Sequence record: LR756501.1
DNA length: 64,000 nucleotides
Direction: 5' to 3' (one strand)
Shown: positions 28,284 through 53,835 of the stretch, piece by piece
How positions within the stretch are numbered: position 1 is the stretch's first letter
Layout of the letters: the number at the start of each line of letters is the position of its first letter
The notes under the pieces: model-generated
Databases searched by the model: none
The model's input: the letters and a program-made list of their open reading frames with translations, nothing else
What the model was told of the DNA's origin: nothing
Position numbers and translations under genes: made by a program

Positions 28284-29456
28284 TTAGTCATGGTCTACGT
28301 AATTGTAATATTGAAAGCTTTTAGCCTTATAATCTATATTTAAAGCGTCTGGTGTTAATAATTGGTTAGTATCTCTATTGAAATATTTGAAAGTGTCCAT
28401 GAAAGGATTATTTTGAGGTACACCGTAATCTCTTTTTACAGTTACTCTCTTCACACCGTTACGGTCTCTTACCCAAGGACCTATCATATTATTCTTTTTA
28501 CAATATTCTACCATCTTTAGTTCACTTGTATTATCNNNNNNNNNNNNNNNNNNNNNGTAAACAGTACCGTCATCTAATTTCCAAATAAGCACTCTAGCCA
28601 TTAACATACCTTTATCGTCTGTTAATATTCCCATAGCACATTTATCTGGATTCTCACAGTAAATATCAAATCTTTTTTGTGATCTACTTGATCTCATACA
28701 AGAACCCCCAAGTGATCCTTGATGTCCGGTTTCACCTTTTCCGTAGGTGGTACCAAGGTACCATTTTCTTATATCTTCACCCACAACCACTTTTAAATTG
28801 TCCTCAACATTCTTTATTATTTTTTCCCATAATAATTTAAATTGTGGAATAAGTGCATCTATGTCTTTATCAGTTAGATCTGGGTCCAATTTTCTAAAGA
28901 ACTTACCAATTTTCATAGTTTGTCTAAAACCAGCTTTATAAGGATCTACAGCTTTATTTTTAATTTCTGATTTAAATTTGGATACAGGCACAAAAGAAAC
29001 TAAATCGCTTTTTTCCATATCAACATTAACGAAGCAAATATCAATATATTTTTTCTTAATTTTGAACTTCAATTCAGCTAGAATGTCTTTAATAAATTTA
29101 CTACAATCGAATTCAACTAAATTTCCTCTTAGAAAATCTTTAGCTTCTTCGGGTGTAATTTTTATAAGACTTCTACCTTGACTTTTTGTGATAGTGAATG
29201 TATCAGTATGTCTGTACTTATGATAAGGCATCCAGTTATAATCCCTTAATTTATTTTCTGGATCATCTGGTTTTTGTACTTTAAGAGTGTAGAAAGTAAT
29301 TTTATCAACGTCTGTAATTGTTTCAACTATAGCAAGTTTACCGTTAAGTTGTTGAATGCCACGGAAATTCTTATCACAGATAACGTAGTCGCCTTCTTTT
29401 ATCTCTTCCTTTTTAACAGCTTCATTTAAAACTAAAAACTCATCATATTTGATCAT
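28284..29456 (-). CDS. SCM-GRALVW-MDRIY family paralog 2 (contains the N-gap)
   Basis: MIKYDEFLVLNEA; GSCMR, ARVLIWK, NPFMDTF. Confidence 0.75.
   Translation of the reverse strand: MIKYDEFLVLNEAVKKEEIKEGDYVICDKNFRGIQQLNGKLAIVETITDVDKITFYTLKVQKPDDPENKLRDYNWMPYHKYRHTDTFTITKSQGRSLIKITPEEAKDFLRGNLVEFDCSKFIKDILAELKFKIKKKYIDICFVNVDMEKSDLVSFVPVSKFKSEIKNKAVDPYKAGFRQTMKIGKFFRKLDPDLTDKDIDALIPQFKLLWEKIIKNVEDNLKVVVGEDIRKWYLGTTYGKGETGHQGSLGGSCMRSSRSQKRFDIYCENPDKCAMGILTDDKGMLMARVLIWKLDDGTVYXXXXXXXDNTSELKMVEYCKKNNMIGPWVRDRNGVKRVTVKRDYGVPQNNPFMDTFKYFNRDTNQLLTPDALNIDYKAKSFQYYNYVDHD
28536..28556. other. Assembly gap (21 N)
   Basis: N-run; in frame, replaces the expected MDRxY segment. Confidence 0.95.
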
Positions 29457-47702: not shown

Positions 47703-48240
47703 TTCTTTGCCTTTCTATATATTCAATTATTTGTACTATTGATAATGGTTCGTAACCAACGTTGTCTACTCCAACATCAATAACACCAGGAGCGTGAACG
47801 TATTCACCATGATGTTCGTAAATTCCGTGAACGTGTCCGTGAAGACAGATTATATCAGAACCTTTTGATGGGTAGTGTGGATAATGACTCATAGAAAAAT
47901 TGTAAGTCTTACCGTTGTGAACGTAAGACATTTCGTGTGAGTAATCCCACCATTGAATTAATCCAGAGTTTTTGTAGTTGTTAAGCATGTATGTTCTATC
48001 ATGATTACCTTTAATCATGTATTTAATACCGTTTAGTTTACATAAAAGATTCCTAGCGAATCTCTTAGACATAGTAAGACTAAAATCACCAAGATAGTAA
48101 ACCTCGTCTTCGGGTTTAATAACTTTGTTCCAGGATTCTGTCATGTGTTTGTTCATAGAATGAACATCACCAAATTGTCTGTTGCAGAATTCAATAATAT
48201 TGCGATGTCCAAAATGGGCATCTGATGTAACGTAAATCAT
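47695..48240 (-). CDS. Calcineurin-like metallophosphoesterase
   Basis: SDAHFGH, GDF, GNHD, HGHVH, DVGVD. Confidence 0.92.
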   Translation of the reverse strand: MIYVTSDAHFGHRNIIEFCNRQFGDVHSMNKHMTESWNKVIKPEDEVYYLGDFSLTMSKRFARNLLCKLNGIKYMIKGNHDRTYMLNNYKNSGLIQWWDYSHEMSYVHNGKTYNFSMSHYPHYPSKGSDIICLHGHVHGIYEHHGEYVHAPGVIDVGVDNVGYEPLSIVQIIEYIERQRNG

Positions 48241-48244
48241 GACG

Positions 48245-48252
48245 CAAATATA
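48245..48252 (-). promoter_or_regulatory. Bacteroidota-type -7 element TATATTTG (near-leaderless transcript)
   Basis: Ends 4 nt before ATG 48240. Confidence 0.6.
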
Positions 48253-48305
48253 ATAATTTTTTTGAAATATAAAAAATTATATATAGTAAAAAAGAATCAG
48301 TCAAT

Positions 48306-48626: not shown

Positions 48627-49040
48627 ATGCACGTTAAAAGATTTAAAGAAATATTTGAAGCTGTGGCTGTACATAAAAGTGTGAAGCCCGAAAAACTTCC
48701 TCATTGTGCCGAGATGGAAGCCAAGGGATATAGAATCGCGTCAATAGGCGACGATAAATACGCTTTTCACAAGAATTACGAAGCAGATGATGATATTTAT
48801 TGGTTAGGTAAAAATACACCCGATTACCAGTACGGTAATACTTATATTGCCACACCAGATATTGTTGCTGATAAGAAACACAACCCTTTTTATTCGATTT
48901 TCTGTAAATGTGATCCAGGTCCAACAGATGAGCAGAAGAAGATCATAGCAGAAAGAGAAAAAGAGAATAAGAAAAGGTACGAGTTAATTCAGAAACAGAT
49001 TAGAGGTGAAGCCGAAAAGAAAAAGAAGAAAAATAAATAA
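48627..49040 (+). CDS. CTS-like small protein
   Basis: MHVKRFKEIFEA. Confidence 0.65.
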   Translation: MHVKRFKEIFEAVAVHKSVKPEKLPHCAEMEAKGYRIASIGDDKYAFHKNYEADDDIYWLGKNTPDYQYGNTYIATPDIVADKKHNPFYSIFCKCDPGPTDEQKKIIAEREKENKKRYELIQKQIRGEAEKKKKKNK

Positions 49041-49043
49041 TTA

Positions 49044-49352
49044 TTAAACCCATGAATTTCGATCAGTCCAACGATTTTTATATGGGTTTGATTTAGTTTC
49101 ATATTTTTTGCTTGGTAAATCATCGTCCCAATTTTCTTCACCGTAAGGGTCAAGTTCTTTCATTCTGTCCTTTTTAATGTTCATCTTCTTGAGTTCCTTT
49201 CTGGCTCTATATGTAACAGAGTAGTCTGATAGTTCTCTTAATTTTTCAAGTATATAAACCCTATCTTTATCTGAAAGATTATGCCAATCATCTTTAGATA
49301 ATTTCATAGATTTAATTTTTCTTAATTCGTATAAATATTCTTGGTCCGTCAT
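49044..49352 (-). CDS. Tagged hypothetical protein
   Basis: ELDPYGEENW near C-terminus; ATGA overlap at 49352. Confidence 0.7.
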   Translation of the reverse strand: MTDQEYLYELRKIKSMKLSKDDWHNLSDKDRVYILEKLRELSDYSVTYRARKELKKMNIKKDRMKELDPYGEENWDDDLPSKKYETKSNPYKNRWTDRNSWV

Positions 49353-49858
49353 ACGTTGTCCTCCCATAATTCTTCACCGTAAGGGTCAGCCTCACTAAAA
49401 ATTTGTTTACCTTTATTGATTGGTTGTATTCTAGCTGCTTCCATATGTGGGAAATGATCCTCTAGTAGAGATACTCTCATTAATTCCATATCAGTATCAA
49501 TGTGATGATAAACAGTGTTTTCACTGGTTAAAATTGAGAGACCGTCGTTTCTCATTATATCTATCAATGGTCTGTTATCGTGTATTAAACACGTCTCGTC
49601 AAATTGAAAAAATGGATCACCATCTATTCTTGAAAATCCCAAAAATCTTATCCAATTTTTGTGGCTATCGTCTGTGAAATCGTGTTTATTTATTATTGCA
49701 CCAGCATCTAATTCTTTACCTATGTAAACCCAACAAGGACCTGATATACCACCTACTTTTTCACGTATTCCAAAATATCCCATTTGTTCTCTTAAACAAG
49801 ATCTTAAAGCTGATTCTAATTGAACAGGTCTTGTTCTTATTTTAAATATTAAAGGCAT
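49349..49858 (-). CDS. Tagged hypothetical protein
   Basis: Ends QIFSEADPYGEELWEDNV. Confidence 0.7.
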   Translation of the reverse strand: MPLIFKIRTRPVQLESALRSCLREQMGYFGIREKVGGISGPCWVYIGKELDAGAIINKHDFTDDSHKNWIRFLGFSRIDGDPFFQFDETCLIHDNRPLIDIMRNDGLSILTSENTVYHHIDTDMELMRVSLLEDHFPHMEAARIQPINKGKQIFSEADPYGEELWEDNV

Positions 49859-49861
49859 AAT

Positions 49862-50431
49862 TTATTCCTCCCAATTTTCTTCACCGTAAGGATCAACAGC
49901 ACAAAACTTTTGTCCCTTTGGTTCTTGTTTTTTTGATATTTGTTTTTCTAAAAACATTAAATCTTCATTGATATGATTTCTCATTCCAATCAAAGCTACT
50001 CTATAATCTCTATGTGTCTTATATCTACCTTTAGTGATGAAAAAATAACCATCTAATTCTCCTCTTGATTTATCTACATTTTCATCCAGTGTCCATATTC
50101 TTCTTCTACATCTAGTAAATCTTTCAGCGGTGTAATCATCCATATTTGGTGCCCATTGCCCATTATAATGTCTAGATACATGATCCAACCTATGTACCAT
50201 AGCGGTTATATTGTTATGTATGGTTCTGTAAGTAGATTTAATATCTTCTATTTCGATCACTATACCATTACCAAGAATTCCCCTAGTAAGATATATAGGA
50301 AATACTCTCATTTTTATTAAATTCCATAATTCAGTACATGTTTTTACAATTATGGCAATAATAACTTTCCAACCTTCTAATGTAAATAAGAGTCTGAATA
50401 TATTACTCAACGTATGGAATACCGCTTTCAT
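49862..50431 (-). CDS. Tagged hypothetical protein with hydrophobic N-terminus
   Basis: Ends KFCAVDPYGEENWEE. Confidence 0.7.
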   Translation of the reverse strand: MKAVFHTLSNIFRLLFTLEGWKVIIAIIVKTCTELWNLIKMRVFPIYLTRGILGNGIVIEIEDIKSTYRTIHNNITAMVHRLDHVSRHYNGQWAPNMDDYTAERFTRCRRRIWTLDENVDKSRGELDGYFFITKGRYKTHRDYRVALIGMRNHINEDLMFLEKQISKKQEPKGQKFCAVDPYGEENWEE

Positions 50432-50732
50432 TTAAAGAATCTAAATAATTGTTATGACCTAATTGAATTTTATCGTAAATTTCGTCTCTGAATTTCACCT
50501 TAACTTCTCTATCTGGATAGTACTCAGCAGTTTCTCTTAATTTTGAACCACTCGGTATAGCTATTAAATCATCATCCATCACGTAAGAACCTTCACCATC
50601 AAACCAGGGAAAATCCATAAGTAACTCGTGTTGGGCTAATAACATAGGATGATATACGTTGCCTTCGAACATTCCTGGTCCCTCTAGACAAACCCACCAT
50701 CTATTTTGTATTTTAGATATCGTGTATCTCAT
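50403..50732 (-). CDS. Hypothetical protein (untagged)
   Basis: In-operon ORF. Confidence 0.6.
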   Translation of the reverse strand: MRYTISKIQNRWWVCLEGPGMFEGNVYHPMLLAQHELLMDFPWFDGEGSYVMDDDLIAIPSGSKLRETAEYYPDREVKVKFRDEIYDKIQLGHNNYLDSLNESGIPYVE

Positions 50733-50735
50733 AAT

Positions 50736-51158
50736 CTACTCCTTCCAATTTTCCTCACCGTAAGGATCTAATTCACTAAAAACCTGACCCTGCGGATCGT
50801 TGTTTTCATATCTTATTTGAGCAGCAACCATCTCAATTCTTAAAGTGTTCATAACACCTTTTTGTCTATCATACATAACATCTATAACAATTCCATGATT
50901 ATCAATAAGATCTGGTGGATTATTTGTAGCGTCACATATTATTTTATAGTTATAAAGGAAGTTAGTAACTTGTAGTTCTTTAAAGATTGGGTCTAATCTC
51001 ATTATAATTTCAGCACGTGTATCTGGTGTGTTGAAACGCATCCACATGTTTTCTAAAGCGTCTTCAATGCTTTTTCTAATTTGAATGAATGCTCTACGTA
51101 CATTTAAGTCGTCGAGTGTTCTTGTGTCTTCATTTATTATCCAAGGACTATTATTCAT
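50736..51158 (-). CDS. Stand-alone tail-sheath C-terminal-domain-like protein plus tag
   Basis: LNVRRAFI...FNTPDTR...YKIICDATNNPPDLIDN; ends DPYGEENWKE. Confidence 0.7.
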   Translation of the reverse strand: MNNSPWIINEDTRTLDDLNVRRAFIQIRKSIEDALENMWMRFNTPDTRAEIIMRLDPIFKELQVTNFLYNYKIICDATNNPPDLIDNHGIVIDVMYDRQKGVMNTLRIEMVAAQIRYENNDPQGQVFSELDPYGEENWKE

Positions 51159-51495
51159 TATCCCACCTTTCTTCACCGTAAGGATCTAATTCACTAAATA
51201 CTTGTTGATAACCGCCTTTAGGGTCATGTCCGTGTAATCCTCTAAAATCACCTTCACAATCAAACCAACCAACATCAGGACGATAACTCCATAACTCACT
51301 AGCCATAGATTTCCCTTGTAATTTTGTTTTAACTCCTTTGTGTTCAATCCACATAGCGTTACCTTGTGAATCTGATTGTAAAACTTTATGGTTATCTGTC
51401 GCATTAATAGTATTACTTAGTTGGAAACTACTTGGGTTTGGTAATCCGTAGCAACTATTAATAACTATTTTATCCCACATTTTATTTATATTCAT
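51151..51495 (-). CDS. Mosaic mini-protein: PolB motif-B-like and fibre-like segments plus tag
   Basis: KIVINSCYG; KVLQSDSQGNAMW; DPYGEERW. Confidence 0.5.
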   Translation of the reverse strand: MNINKMWDKIVINSCYGLPNPSSFQLSNTINATDNHKVLQSDSQGNAMWIEHKGVKTKLQGKSMASELWSYRPDVGWFDCEGDFRGLHGHDPKGGYQQVFSELDPYGEERWDNE

Positions 51496-51881
51496 TACCA
51501 GTTCTCCTCTCCGTATGGATCTAATTCACTAAATCTTTGTTCACCTTTTGTTTGTTGGTTTTGTTTCCACATAGACATTCCAACATTATCTTTTAAATAA
51601 TCTGGAAGTTTTTCGAACGCTTCTCTCATATATTTTTGTCCTGATTCTGTAACTCCTAGTCCTCTTGCGTGATCGTAATAATTAGTGGACCAATGGTTTA
51701 TTAATCCTAATTTATCCCATTTCTCAATAGCATCTCTACGTATTTTCCTGAGAGTTTCTTTATCAATAGAATTTTCGTATTCTTTTACAAGTTCTAGTTC
51801 TCTCTTAGCAATACTATCAAAGCTCTCCATTTTCATGAGATCGTCTTGTAATTCTTTTAATTGTTCTTTGGTCATCGCCAT
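51495..51881 (-). CDS. Mosaic mini-protein: capsid-N-terminal-like and terminase-like segments plus tag
   Basis: IEKWDKLGL; ARGLGVTE; EAFEKLPDYLK; DPYGEENW. Confidence 0.45.
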   Translation of the reverse strand: MAMTKEQLKELQDDLMKMESFDSIAKRELELVKEYENSIDKETLRKIRRDAIEKWDKLGLINHWSTNYYDHARGLGVTESGQKYMREAFEKLPDYLKDNVGMSMWKQNQQTKGEQRFSELDPYGEENW

Positions 51882-52237
51882 TAATTCCTCCAATCTTCCT
51901 CACCGTAAGGGTCTAAATCACTAACTACTCTAGTTATTTCAGTCTTTCTGATACCTCTACCTATTGACTGTTTTTCGTATAAACTATCTGGTTTACCAAA
52001 CACGTCAAAAAATTCTTTCGAAGAATTGATGAACACAGGTTTATTTTTAGGTCCACCTTTAGGTTCACTAAGGAATTCGTTTCCAATTAATACTGATTTT
52101 ACTTCTCTTGTTTCTGGAAACTCCACAGGCGTAAAGTCAGCACCAATGGGTGTTGACGTAACAATCACTTTACCCTTATGTGGTGTTAATTTGGGCAAAG
52201 CTGAGTTCCACATTTTTCTATAAGTAGAAATATCCAT
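51881..52237 (-). CDS. Mosaic mini-protein: terminase-like and sheath-N-terminal-like segments plus tag
   Basis: WNSALPKL..KVIVTSTPIG; GGPKNKPVFINSSKEFFDVFGKP; DPYGEEDW. Confidence 0.55.
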   Translation of the reverse strand: MDISTYRKMWNSALPKLTPHKGKVIVTSTPIGADFTPVEFPETREVKSVLIGNEFLSEPKGGPKNKPVFINSSKEFFDVFGKPDSLYEKQSIGRGIRKTEITRVVSDLDPYGEEDWRN

Positions 52238-52454
52238 CTATATGATTTCCTCCAACCGTGTAATCTTCATTACACTCTAAACATTTATATTCAGTAGTAC
52301 TATCATTTTTATCAGGATTTGTATTTACACCGTTCTTATCGTAAATAGGTGGATAATAAACAGCGTGACTAACACTCATGCCTGATGTTCTTGTCGTAGG
52401 TACTTGGCAATGTGGACATATTGGCACACTACCTGTTAATTCAACTTTCTTCAT
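52218..52454 (-). CDS. Zn-ribbon hypothetical protein (untagged)
   Basis: CPHC...CLEC. Confidence 0.65.
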   Translation of the reverse strand: MKKVELTGSVPICPHCQVPTTRTSGMSVSHAVYYPPIYDKNGVNTNPDKNDSTTEYKCLECNEDYTVGGNHIDGYFYL

Positions 52455-52713
52455 ACCAATTCTCCTCTCCGTAAGGATCAATTTTTCTTATCCCTCTTAC
52501 TTTTTCTGGGTTATCAATAAAATCATTAAGTTTCTTTTCTAACTCAACAATTTTTTCTTGTAATTCTTTAATTTTAGTTTCATCTGCTGGTGCTCCCTGT
52601 GGGCCCATGGGTCCTTCTGTTATATAATTCGTGCTTGTTGTATATCTGGTTGCACCGCCAGGTGTGTGAATTTCATAACTATATTCCCAAGGAGGGTATG
52701 GTATGCTAGGCAT
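52441..52713 (-). CDS. Mini-protein with collagen-like triplets, coiled coil and tag
   Basis: GPMGPQGAP; DPYGEENW. Confidence 0.65.
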   Translation of the reverse strand: MPSIPYPPWEYSYEIHTPGGATRYTTSTNYITEGPMGPQGAPADETKIKELQEKIVELEKKLNDFIDNPEKVRGIRKIDPYGEENWYEES

Positions 52714-52731
52714 TGTTTTTTATATTAAAAA

Positions 52732-52974
52732 TTATTCATTCCAATTTTCTTCACCGTAAGGATCTAACTCTGTATAGACTCTTTTAATTTCAGTATAAAC
52801 AAAAGATTCACCTGGATTATAACCCCCGCCTCCTCCATATAAGTGAACCATTTCATTTGGATTCTGTCCCCCCATACCAAGATACCCGTTACTATTTACA
52901 TACATTCTAGCTGCAGTAAAACCCGGATCTGGTCTGAGGTCATAAGTTACCAAATTAAACGGTGGACTCTTCAT
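52732..52974 (-). CDS. Mini-protein with tail-fibre-like repeat plus tag
   Basis: RMYVNSNGYLGMGGQNPNEMVHLYG; KRVYTELDPYGEENW. Confidence 0.6.
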   Translation of the reverse strand: MKSPPFNLVTYDLRPDPGFTAARMYVNSNGYLGMGGQNPNEMVHLYGGGGGYNPGESFVYTEIKRVYTELDPYGEENWNE

Positions 52975-53107
52975 CTTCTTCTGAAACTTCTTTTGGCTCT
53001 ACGTAATTCTCTTCGTCTGGTAAAGCGTTCCTTTGTTCCCTCTGCCAAGCAAAAGCTAATATTAATAAAAATGCAATCAATCCTAAAATAAGAAAAAATA
53101 CTATCAT
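52955..53107 (-). CDS. 50-aa single-TM protein (not in ORF track)
   Basis: MIVFFLILGLIAFLLILAFAW + acidic tail; GGAGG upstream. Confidence 0.65.
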   Translation of the reverse strand: MIVFFLILGLIAFLLILAFAWQREQRNALPDEENYVEPKEVSEEDEESTV

Positions 53108-53130
53108 AATGTGTCCTCCGTTTTTAGTTT

Positions 53131-53331
53131 TTATAAATCGTGTCTGTTATATTCATTGTAAATAATAGTCAACATCATGTTACCATGAGTTTCTTCATGT
53201 GATTGTGTTACACTTATTATCTTTTGTCCAAGTTTATTTGATCTTTGCTCTTCAAACCATTTATTCACTTCATTTCCAACATTTTTTGGAGCACCAGTGA
53301 ATACTTTACATTTCATAAAAGTCTCATCCAT
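53131..53331 (-). CDS. Hypothetical protein
   Basis: In-operon ORF. Confidence 0.6.
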   Translation of the reverse strand: MDETFMKCKVFTGAPKNVGNEVNKWFEEQRSNKLGQKIISVTQSHEETHGNMMLTIIYNEYNRHDL

Positions 53332-53332
53332 A

Positions 53333-53821
53333 TTATTTATTTAATTTTTTAATTTCTTGTAATATATTATAATAAAAATCTTTCAAATTATAAGCGATCT
53401 TCATATCAGGTCTAGCCAATCTAGTCTGTATTTCAACATCATCTCTTCTCTCGTACTGATTATCAATACCAACGATTATTTTCTTTTTGCGTCCAGTTAT
53501 AAATTTACCGTATTCAAACAGTACTATTGGATTTAATGATCCGTTAGCAAACCAGAAAGCAATAATATCTGACTCTTTTAACTTTTTATATTCCCACGCT
53601 ATTTGTCTCTCGGCCTCTTCTTTTACATCCATAGGAAAAACTGCTCTTCTAGGACTAAAAACTATAACGTCACATAAATAATCGTGAGTTTTACTTTCAC
53701 TATCAACGAACAATTTCTCAATTATTTCAGACTGCCAATCAGCACAGTTAGTAATACCACCACCTAGGAATAATTTAATAGGTGATTTTATTTCTTCTGG
53801 GGCTATTATAAACTGTATCAT
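53333..53821 (-). CDS. Nucleoside 2-deoxyribosyltransferase-like protein
   Basis: LFLGGGI..DWQ, SPRR, QIAWE, DIIAFWF, PIVLFEYG. Confidence 0.75.
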   Translation of the reverse strand: MIQFIIAPEEIKSPIKLFLGGGITNCADWQSEIIEKLFVDSESKTHDYLCDVIVFSPRRAVFPMDVKEEAERQIAWEYKKLKESDIIAFWFANGSLNPIVLFEYGKFITGRKKKIIVGIDNQYERRDDVEIQTRLARPDMKIAYNLKDFYYNILQEIKKLNK

Positions 53822-53835
53822 TTTTAATCCTTATT

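Follow-up and report, generated by a model that had tools for sequence, protein, structure and literature searches.

Stand-alone tail-sheath pieces carrying a shared eight-residue tag in a 735-kb freshwater phage

Contractile tail sheaths are built from proteins of several hundred residues, yet one locus of a 735-kb freshwater "huge phage" (record LR756501.1) appeared to encode only the ends of such a protein, in two small and separate ORFs. Are these pieces true sheath relatives, are they debris or halves of a split gene, and what might they do? The original prediction, made from a 64,000-nucleotide stretch of this record (hereafter the window, in which an N run at 28536-28556 was kept masked), was that one ORF is a free sheath C-terminal domain and the other holds a sheath N-terminal motif, that both are tagged, and that such fragments might cap, poison or mimic sheath assembly. 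On the basis of our results, the observation itself is confirmed, whereas the interpretation is only partly supported. The features examined are listed in Table 1. Translation with code 11 reads the region as open frames without stops, and no other genetic code was needed.

Table 1. Features of the locus (window coordinates unless stated otherwise)
Position	Strand	Feature	Remarks
50736..51158	-	C-fragment gene, 140-aa stand-alone sheath C-terminal domain protein with C-terminal tag	Start inferred from the ATG of the orthologues P0001 and P0002; an upstream in-frame GTG at 51176 would give 146 aa
50874..51128	-	Sheath C-terminal domain of the C-fragment	Model shows two helices and a four-stranded sheet; AF2 core pLDDT 86-94
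50739..50786	-	C-terminal tail of the C-fragment with the tag (QVFSEL-DPYGEENW-KE), predicted to be disordered	Tag site at 50751-50768; pLDDT below 50 for residues 124-140
51881..52237	-	N-fragment gene, 118-aa mosaic protein with C-terminal tag
51968..52108	-	Copy of the conserved N-terminal segment of the sheath	47 aa aligned
52142..52222	-	Weak resemblance to the large-terminase motif region (KIIITSTPDG type), a lead only	Terminase ORF, identified as such separately, is the top score among 849 ORFs; shuffle p 0.004 for a single test, which does not survive multiple testing
51890..51913	-	Tag of the N-fragment (DPYGEEDW)
49349..49858	-	Neighbouring tagged 169-aa ORF; residues 2-86 are a paralogue of major capsid protein residues 165-245	BLASTP 38% identity, E 6e-17; phmmer 1e-17; dN/dS 0.20; orthologue present in the related locus L140
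49044..52974	-	Cluster of 11 consecutive small ORFs, 9 of them tagged	Untagged: 50403-50732 and 52218-52481
51987..53833	-	1.85-kb stretch absent from the nearest relative	Six small ORFs and the first two-thirds of the N-fragment gene; blastn of locus L165 against the window
596429-600286 (record)		Intact 1285-aa sheath gene

Sheath-derived ends in separate genes

We first examined whether the C-fragment is a genuine sheath domain. It matched the Pfam family Phage_sheath_1C (PF17482) at E 9e-8, with 32.5 bits against a cut-off of 26.9, and PHROG tail-sheath families at E 1.6e-14 (phrog_23) and 2.2e-12. A profile of the C-fragment aligned to residues 548-644 of the 659 residues of T4 gp18 (E 2e-7), and the protein aligned to residues 1174-1262 of the phage's own sheath at 40% identity (E 6e-14; phmmer 7e-16). 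The orthologues support the 140-aa form that had been proposed. A first structural model built from 3 sequences was poor (pLDDT 60) and gave no significant Foldseek match, whereas a model built from 21 sequences reached pLDDT 75.7 and matched T4 gp18 (9mkb) at E 7.8e-4, with probability 1.0 and an rmsd of 3.0 over 84 columns, as well as the KP1 (probability 1.0), pyocin, AFP and PVC sheaths. The same model also matched the small baseplate proteins of roughly 130 aa that include T4 gp25, the sheath initiator (9f4b_AA, 5iv5_BD and 5iw9_A; probability 0.92-1.0, TM 0.42-0.47), which gives the mimic idea structural backing.

The N-terminal motif of the second ORF is real but short. No Pfam hit was found for the N-fragment, but its residues 44-90 aligned to residues 28-73 of the phage's own sheath at 45% identity. 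The pairwise E value was 3e-7, a six-frame search of the whole genome gave 5.6e-5, phmmer with the tag removed gave 8.9e-6, and phrog_23 matched at profile positions 59-84 with E 0.039.

A split sheath gene, which had been named beforehand as the refuting case, is excluded. An intact sheath with its own N- and C-termini lies 46 kb from the C-fragment, directly followed by the tube gene, and the two pieces are only 40-45% identical paralogues of it. In addition, the N-fragment is absent from a relative that keeps the C-fragment. Neither piece is a full-length sheath, because the C-fragment holds the C-domain only and the N-fragment has only its short aligned segment.

Conservation of the C-fragment and loss of the N-fragment

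The original prediction missed that the C-fragment belongs to a conserved gene family under purifying selection, whereas the N-fragment is dispensable. The orthologues P0001 (91% identical) and P0002 (61% identical) have the same length and keep the tag, and dN/dS was 0.087 and 0.23. At least 11 clusters of tagged short homologues, all keeping the tail, were found among 1.84 billion representative sequences, although a search for related loci with the C-fragment profile recovered only the known relative. The C-fragment sits beside a full-length sheath in every related contig that shows one, that is, in the 735-kb phage and in the contigs G003, G006 and G001/G005. However, across these phages the C-domain of the full-length sheath is 93-99% identical, while the C-fragments are only 27-91% identical to each other. 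Such fast divergence is unexpected if the only partner were the nearly invariant sheath of the same phage.

On the other hand, a word-index search with the N-fragment found only the query itself, and the nearest relative has deleted its 5' two-thirds, leaving an in-frame remnant and a 23-codon tag stub. It should be noted that the N-fragment may do little. One might suppose that such fragments are inert by-products of recombination that joins random pieces of the genome to tag-bearing stubs, whether translated or not. The singleton and mosaic nature of the N-fragment, its loss from the relative and the existence of other mosaics of short pieces from different genes would agree with this. For the C-fragment the idea is excluded by its dN/dS, its conserved length and tag and its presence in all related contigs with a sheath. 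The pieces also keep residues while their codons diverge, and their sources are far from random (see below), so that we consider this explanation very unlikely. With regard to expression, only DNA runs, and no RNA run, were found to contain the stretch; contig comparison showed only that the same strain occurs in a second study.

A genome-wide tag and a class of virion look-alikes

Both fragments also belong to a genome-wide class of tagged proteins, which the original prediction did not recognize. The degenerate DNA pattern for DPYGEE matched 22 times in the window, against 0.00 in 100 shuffles, and 109 times in the 735-kb record, where none is expected by chance, on 94 ORFs that share only the tag. 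W at position +7 is present in 103 of the 109 sites. The tag is C-terminal at 41 sites, N-terminal at 22 and internal at 46, and no consistent cleavage motif flanks it. It also occurs on many large IMG/VR contigs, whereas no paper in the literature library searched contained the tag in a phage context. A DNA-level repeat, promoter or mobile element was rejected as the origin of the pattern, because codons vary at synonymous sites while the residues are invariant. A tubulin-tyrosine-ligase family enzyme was considered as reader or writer of the tag. Its gene is present in the 735-kb phage, in the P0002 contig 4 kb from the C-fragment, and in the contig G002, but it is absent from four other tag-bearing contigs, which may be fragments; it remains a lead only.

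The tagged ORFs include look-alike pieces of the capsid protein, portal and prohead protease/scaffold. Seven of the 11 tagged ORFs with any match hit four virion proteins, which make up 2.3% of the search space (p about 1e-9). Recent gene conversion from the parent genes was rejected, since only 42-57% of codons are identical at identical residues; the likeness is thus kept at the protein level. However, the tag also sits on enzymes (a CCA-adding enzyme, an acetyltransferase, a deaminase and methyltransferases) and therefore says nothing specific about sheath assembly.

These data suggested a possible role as packaged cargo, in which the tag would be a capsid (prohead-core) targeting peptide and the tagged proteins, including the sheath pieces, would be loaded into the giant head and injected with the DNA to act early in the next cell, as the T4 internal proteins and Alt do. 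The head genes are of T4 type (portal gp20, protease gp21 and capsid gp23 all match), tagged paralogues of the prohead protease domain and of the scaffold repeats exist, some tagged proteins are enzymes, and the tagged proteins are diverse, small and fast-evolving, share only a short peptide and lie in indel-rich clusters, which is the T4 internal-protein pattern (PMC3012670). Against this, the tag differs from the T4 sequence in sequence and position, no protease cleavage motif is evident, 94 different cargo proteins would be far more than is known for any phage, and a tail-sheath domain has no obvious role inside a head. We regard this reading, which partly overlaps with the one preferred below because it names the partner, as doubtful.

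Alternatively, the pieces might be immune decoys that copy the most conserved parts of core virion proteins because host pattern-recognition defences sense exactly these proteins; they would bind the sensors without activating them, and the tag would deliver the bound sensor to a neutralising partner. The strong bias of the sources towards capsid, portal, protease and sheath proteins and the fast evolution under purifying selection would be consistent with this. Many defence families sense capsid, portal and tail proteins, and the sheath has been proposed as a further target (PMC13581612). An untagged stand-alone sheath C-domain in another phage lies close to an Acb5-family (PF26761) gene. However, the idea is wholly inferential, with no sensor, host or interaction known here; known sensors read folded shapes whereas several of the pieces are short peptides, and tagged enzymes do not fit a decoy role. 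It appears unlikely.

Possible function and relation to known systems

Taken together, the two ORFs are real, separate genes derived from the sheath gene family and members of a lineage-wide class of small accessory proteins, each with a variable body joined to an invariant short peptide, DPYGEExW, in a disordered tail. What our analysis establishes is that the C-fragment is a whole sheath C-terminal domain, the part whose beta-sheet receives strands exchanged between subunits in assembled sheaths, without an N-terminal exchange strand; that it is conserved, under purifying selection and accompanied by a full-length sheath wherever one is seen; that the N-fragment holds a short copy of the N-terminal segment and is dispensable; and that other tagged ORFs hold copies of conserved segments of virion proteins. 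Function, by contrast, including any binding, is inferred. With about even confidence, we suggest that the sheath pieces act as interface mimics with a docking tag. The C-fragment, like gp25, would bind the exchange strands of sheath subunits but could not extend the lattice through an N-terminal strand, and could therefore hold, cap or block subunits of the phage's own or a foreign sheath; none of the present data show that the pieces cap or poison assembly. The tag would be a portable docking peptide that brings all tagged proteins to one putative common partner.

A further, more tentative possibility is that this lineage runs an undescribed addressing system, in which one peptide marks about a hundred proteins for a single reader and a dedicated subset are deliberate look-alikes of the conserved contact segments of the phage's own sheath, capsid protein, portal and protease, used to control assembly, to sabotage co-infecting relatives or to disarm host sensors of virion proteins. 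The stand-alone sheath domain would then be the first natural soluble competitor of sheath strand exchange.

Although sheath C-terminal domains and gp25-like initiators are known, the present arrangement of separate, tagged end pieces beside a normal sheath gene has not been described. Contractile sheaths polymerise by strand exchange. The only known small proteins with that fold, gp25 and TssE, start the polymer, and a conserved, soluble, tagged copy of the same domain in the largest known phage lineage suggests a further level of control or conflict over sheath assembly and offers a natural reagent for probing it. If its reader can be found, the tag would make many proteins of unknown function in huge phages testable at once. 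Moreover, conserved copies of capsid, portal, protease and sheath segments kept as separate small genes are not something current phage annotation expects.

Compared with T4-type sheath proteins (gp18), the C-fragment shares the motifs NT..TR and Y.V.CD.TNN.P..ID and the predicted fold, with about 30% identity to roughly 2000 GenBank T4-like sheaths. It differs in having only the last 100 or so residues, no N-terminal strand or outer domains, an added tagged tail and much faster evolution.

Like gp25/TssE (PF04965), which is thought to start the sheath by the same strand exchange (PMC6088184), it is predicted to be little more than a small sheath-like strand-exchange domain. This raised the possibility that the C-fragment is a true virion part, an essential initiator or terminator standing in for gp25. 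No PF04965 match was found in the whole record or in the ORFs next to the baseplate hub, although a divergent gp25 could simply have been missed, and the C-fragment is present wherever a full-length sheath is seen. However, PF04965 was also not among the Pfam matches of the C-fragment itself at E up to 1, by sequence it is a sheath paralogue, and its gene lies within the tagged cluster, away from the sheath and tube genes and about 85 kb from the Phage_base_V hub gene. It also diverges to 27% identity while the sheath it would have to fit stays at least 93% identical, and it shares its tail with enzymes. We therefore consider this role improbable.

[quoted passage not shown] Encapsulin cargo-loading peptides are short terminal peptides that dock diverse cargo proteins to the inside of an HK97-fold shell; their sequence is different, and shell binding by the present tag would be by analogy only. 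Finally, other stand-alone sheath C-domain proteins of 113-152 aa were found in this study (P0083, P0092, P0018, P0068 and others). They have the same domain but no DPYGEExW tag. P0083 lies among non-structural phage genes, and P0083 and P0092 instead carry twin-arginine-type signal peptides, which is a different address on the same domain.

Sheath-derived pieces and the intact sheath gene

The stretch analyzed here belongs to the 735,411-bp unannotated record LR756501.1, the 735-kb phage genome reported by Al-Shayeb et al. (2020), who placed their largest genomes in the Mahaphage clade with predicted Bacteroidetes hosts (PMC7162821). Sequencing runs containing the stretch were freshwater metagenomes from two studies, all of them DNA data sets. 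Standard code 11 gave dense open frames, and therefore no other code was used. The coordinates of all features are listed in the table below.

The original prediction, that a free C-terminal domain and an N-terminal motif of the tail sheath are encoded by separate ORFs, was confirmed. The first ORF (C-fragment) matched Pfam Phage_sheath_1C above the curated cut-off (E 9e-8, 32.5 bits against 26.9) as well as PHROG tail-sheath families (1.6e-14), and a profile built from it and two orthologues could be aligned to residues 548-644 of the 659-residue T4 gp18 (E 2e-7). Orthologues start at the ATG at 51158, which gives the 140-aa protein originally described. The second ORF (N-fragment) had no Pfam hit, but its residues 44-90 aligned to the N-terminal segment of the phage's own sheath at 45% identity, with an E-value of 3e-7 in the pairwise comparison, 5.6e-5 in a six-frame search of the record and 8.9e-6 in a phmmer search after removal of the tag.

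We then examined whether the two ORFs could be the halves of a split gene, which would have argued against the original proposal. An intact 1285-aa sheath gene (PHROG tail sheath, E 3e-75), directly followed by the tube gene, was found 46 kb from the fragments and outside the window, and the C-fragment is 40% identical to sheath residues 1174-1262 (E 6e-14). Thus, the fragments are old paralogues of the two conserved ends of the sheath and not its halves.

Coordinates of the features examined in the window, in record LR756501.1 and in related loci
Location	Feature	Details
record 503061-567060	The window	Window 49000-53000 is 100% identical to the record
window 50736-51176 (-)	C-fragment ORF	Start of orthologues at 51158
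window 51881-52237	N-fragment ORF
record 596429-600286	Intact tail-sheath gene	1285 aa
window 51987-53833	Stretch lacking in the nearest relative	Six small ORFs and the first two-thirds of the N-fragment gene
window 49044-52974	Local cluster of 11 consecutive ORFs	Nine carry the tag
window 2656-57438	Tag sites in the window	22 sites
window 49349-49858 (-)	Tagged 169-aa ORF	Paralogue of major capsid protein residues 165-245
L140:75-3256 (IMGVR_UViG_3300027896_000352)	Array of nine consecutive tagged small ORFs	Ends with a sheath C-fragment
record 497197-498567 (-)	Tagged 456-aa mosaic ORF	4.5 kb before the window start
record 385423-385596 (-)	Untagged 57-aa ORF	Resembles the last two strands of the sheath
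record 662105-663385 (-); L161:6238-7542	Tubulin-tyrosine-ligase family (PF03133) gene	80 bits in this phage; another in the contig of the homologue P0002
window 48240-48279 versus L165:7890-8936	1-kb insertion in the nearest relative	313-aa ORF
L180:5001-5438	P0083, stand-alone sheath C-domain protein	No tag
record 675717-675908, 676134-676484; L140:1724-2020; P0010	Small proteins with a shared N-terminal start	Type M-[PG]-LAHF
record 609226-611493 (-) and a nearby ORF of at most 260 aa	Large terminase and a second terminase match	Large terminase of 755 aa
window 28536-28556	Run of 21 N (masked)

Conservation and predicted structure

The C-fragment is a conserved gene. Two close homologues of the same length, P0001 (91% identical) and P0002 (61% identical), keep the tag, and dN/dS was 0.087 against P0001 and about 0.2 against P0002, where dS is saturated. 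A full HMMER scan of 1.84 billion representatives listed nine short proteins of 130-158 aa first, ahead of hundreds of full-length sheaths, and 11 clusters of short proteins in all ended in the same tail and tag. In every related contig in which a full-length sheath was visible (the 735-kb phage and the contigs G003, G006 and G001/G005), a tagged C-fragment was also present. The C-domains of the full-length sheaths are 93-99% identical across these phages, whereas the C-fragments are only 27-91% identical to each other and 25-34% identical to the sheath. Thus, the duplication is old, and the small gene evolves roughly ten times faster than its parent. Among 50,697 GenBank phage records only this one has the small gene, and about 2000 T4-like phages matched only through their full-length sheaths.

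With 21 homologues, AlphaFold2 predicted a structure of two long helices and a four-stranded sheet (pLDDT 75.7, with 86-94 in the core), in which residues 124-140, carrying the tag, are disordered. Foldseek placed the model on the C-terminal domain of T4 gp18 (E 7.8e-4, probability 1.0, 24% identity) and on other sheaths, and also on baseplate chains of about 130 residues, including T4 gp25, the 'sheath polymerization initiator'. In assembled sheaths, the sheet in this part of the subunit is extended by an N-terminal strand from one neighbor and a C-terminal strand from another, forming an interwoven mesh, and gp25 is thought to start the polymer by the same exchange (PMC6088184). The C-fragment has the receiving domain, with its last strand at residues 114-119, but no N-terminal strand. 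No gp25-family match could be found in the record or next to the baseplate hub gene, which leaves a small chance that the C-fragment is itself a tail part, although its location and fast evolution argue against this.

In contrast, the N-fragment is dispensable. It had no homologue other than itself in 5.8 billion proteins, and the nearest relative (locus L165), which is 86-89% identical in DNA, lacks the first two-thirds of the gene together with six small ORFs. This relative keeps an in-frame remnant of the last 40 or so codons, of which only a 23-codon ORF with the tag is left; the gene is therefore ancestral and was deleted in the relative. The relative also has a 1-kb insertion absent from the window, encoding a 313-aa ORF with a faint LAGLIDADG match, which suggests a homing endonuclease. 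The first 45 residues of the N-fragment weakly resembled the motif-III region of the large terminase, and the terminase ORF had the top score among 849 ORFs, but the single-test P of 0.004 was not significant after correction. A second, small ORF in the 575-660 kb region also matched terminase PHROGs (E 2.5e-20); the terminase gene may be split or have a partial paralogue. By the gp18 domain map, the copied N-terminal segment would belong to a different domain from the C-fragment, and therefore the two pieces would not rebuild one domain.

The DPYGEExW tag and other virion look-alikes

DPYGEE occurred 109 times in the record, always in long open frames, on 94 ORFs, and 22 times in the window, against none in 100 shuffles. 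W follows at +7 in 103 of 109 sites. All synonymous codons for D, P, Y, G and E are used, so the constraint is on the peptide and not on the DNA. Of these sites, 41 lie 8-12 residues before the stop, 22 lie near the N-terminus and 46 are internal, with up to four copies in one protein (1233-aa and 843-aa ORFs); the C-terminal sites share a pre-tag consensus of the type [KR][VI][FY][ST]x[LE]. The same DNA pattern was found in clusters on many large IMG/VR contigs, where 203 further tagged ORFs were called. No paper in the literature collection searched mentions the motif in a phage context. In addition, unrelated small proteins in several phages, one of them a sheath C-fragment (P0010), share an N-terminal start of the type M-[PG]-LAHF, which may be a second shared terminal peptide.

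With the tag masked, other tagged ORFs matched parts of three neighboring head genes, which were identified as the T4-type portal, the prohead protease with scaffold repeats and the gp23-type capsid protein. One of them, in the window itself, copies part of the capsid protein (38% identity, E 6e-17, dN/dS 0.20) and has an orthologue in the IMG/VR locus L140. Seven of the eleven tagged small ORFs with any match to a large untagged protein hit these three proteins or the sheath, which together are 2.3% of the search space (P about 1e-9). It should be noted that slowly evolving parents are easier to detect, so some bias is possible. The pattern recurs in relatives: L140 has nine consecutive tagged ORFs, several of which copy successive parts of the capsid protein (residues 26-64, 46-148, 164-325, 331-411 and 543-590), followed by a sheath C-fragment. 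Two further sheath look-alikes were identified outside the window. The tagged 456-aa mosaic joins a 17-residue copy of the sheath N-terminal strand motif (sheath residues 8-24, 76% identity) directly to a copy of capsid residues about 111-132, and the untagged 57-aa ORF copies sheath residues 1240-1277 (39% identity, E 9e-4 within the genome). All four sheath-derived pieces come from the conserved ends of the sheath and none from its long middle. At residues identical between copy and parent, only 42-57% of codons are identical; thus, the likeness is kept by selection on the protein and not by recent gene conversion.

The tag is not limited to such pieces, as tagged ORFs also include a CCA-adding enzyme, an acetyltransferase, a deaminase, methyltransferases and a phosphoribosyltransferase. 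A possible reader or writer of the tag is the tubulin-tyrosine-ligase family gene, since the substrates of this family in eukaryotes are acidic GEE-type tails, and another such gene lies 4 kb from the C-fragment in the P0002 contig, next to a Cpn60 chaperonin gene. However, this link is weak: the gene was found in three of the tag-bearing contigs examined and was absent from four others that may be fragmentary.

Possible roles and comparison with known systems

Taken together, our analysis established the identity of the pieces, the presence of an intact sheath elsewhere, the conservation of the C-fragment, the loss of the N-fragment in the nearest relative, a disordered tag under peptide-level constraint and a non-random class of virion look-alikes. 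On the other hand, it is only inferred that the C-fragment binds the exchange strands of sheath subunits, as gp25 does, and would thereby hold, cap or block them, and that the tag is a docking peptide for one common putative partner. The original suggestion that the pieces might cap, poison or mimic sheath assembly was only partly supported. The finding is nevertheless more than a pair of gene fragments: the C-fragment is a stand-alone, tagged form of the sheath strand-exchange domain, which is new, and it is embedded in an undescribed tag system whose putative reader is the key question.

The fast evolution of the C-fragment against a nearly invariant sheath fits a changing partner better than pure self-assembly. 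Such a partner could be a competitor phage or a host sensor of virion proteins (PMC13581612), and for this reason the possibilities that the pieces serve as decoys or are packaged as cargo are kept as rival readings. The closest precedent for the tag is the T4 capsid targeting sequence, which is the only conserved part of a highly diverse set of internal defence proteins (PMC3012670). Moreover, stand-alone sheath C-domain proteins without the tag but with twin-arginine-type signal peptides were found in other contigs (P0083, which lies among ribonucleotide reductase, Acb5, DnaJ and methyltransferase genes of another phage-like contig, and P0092), suggesting that this domain has been given different addresses more than once.
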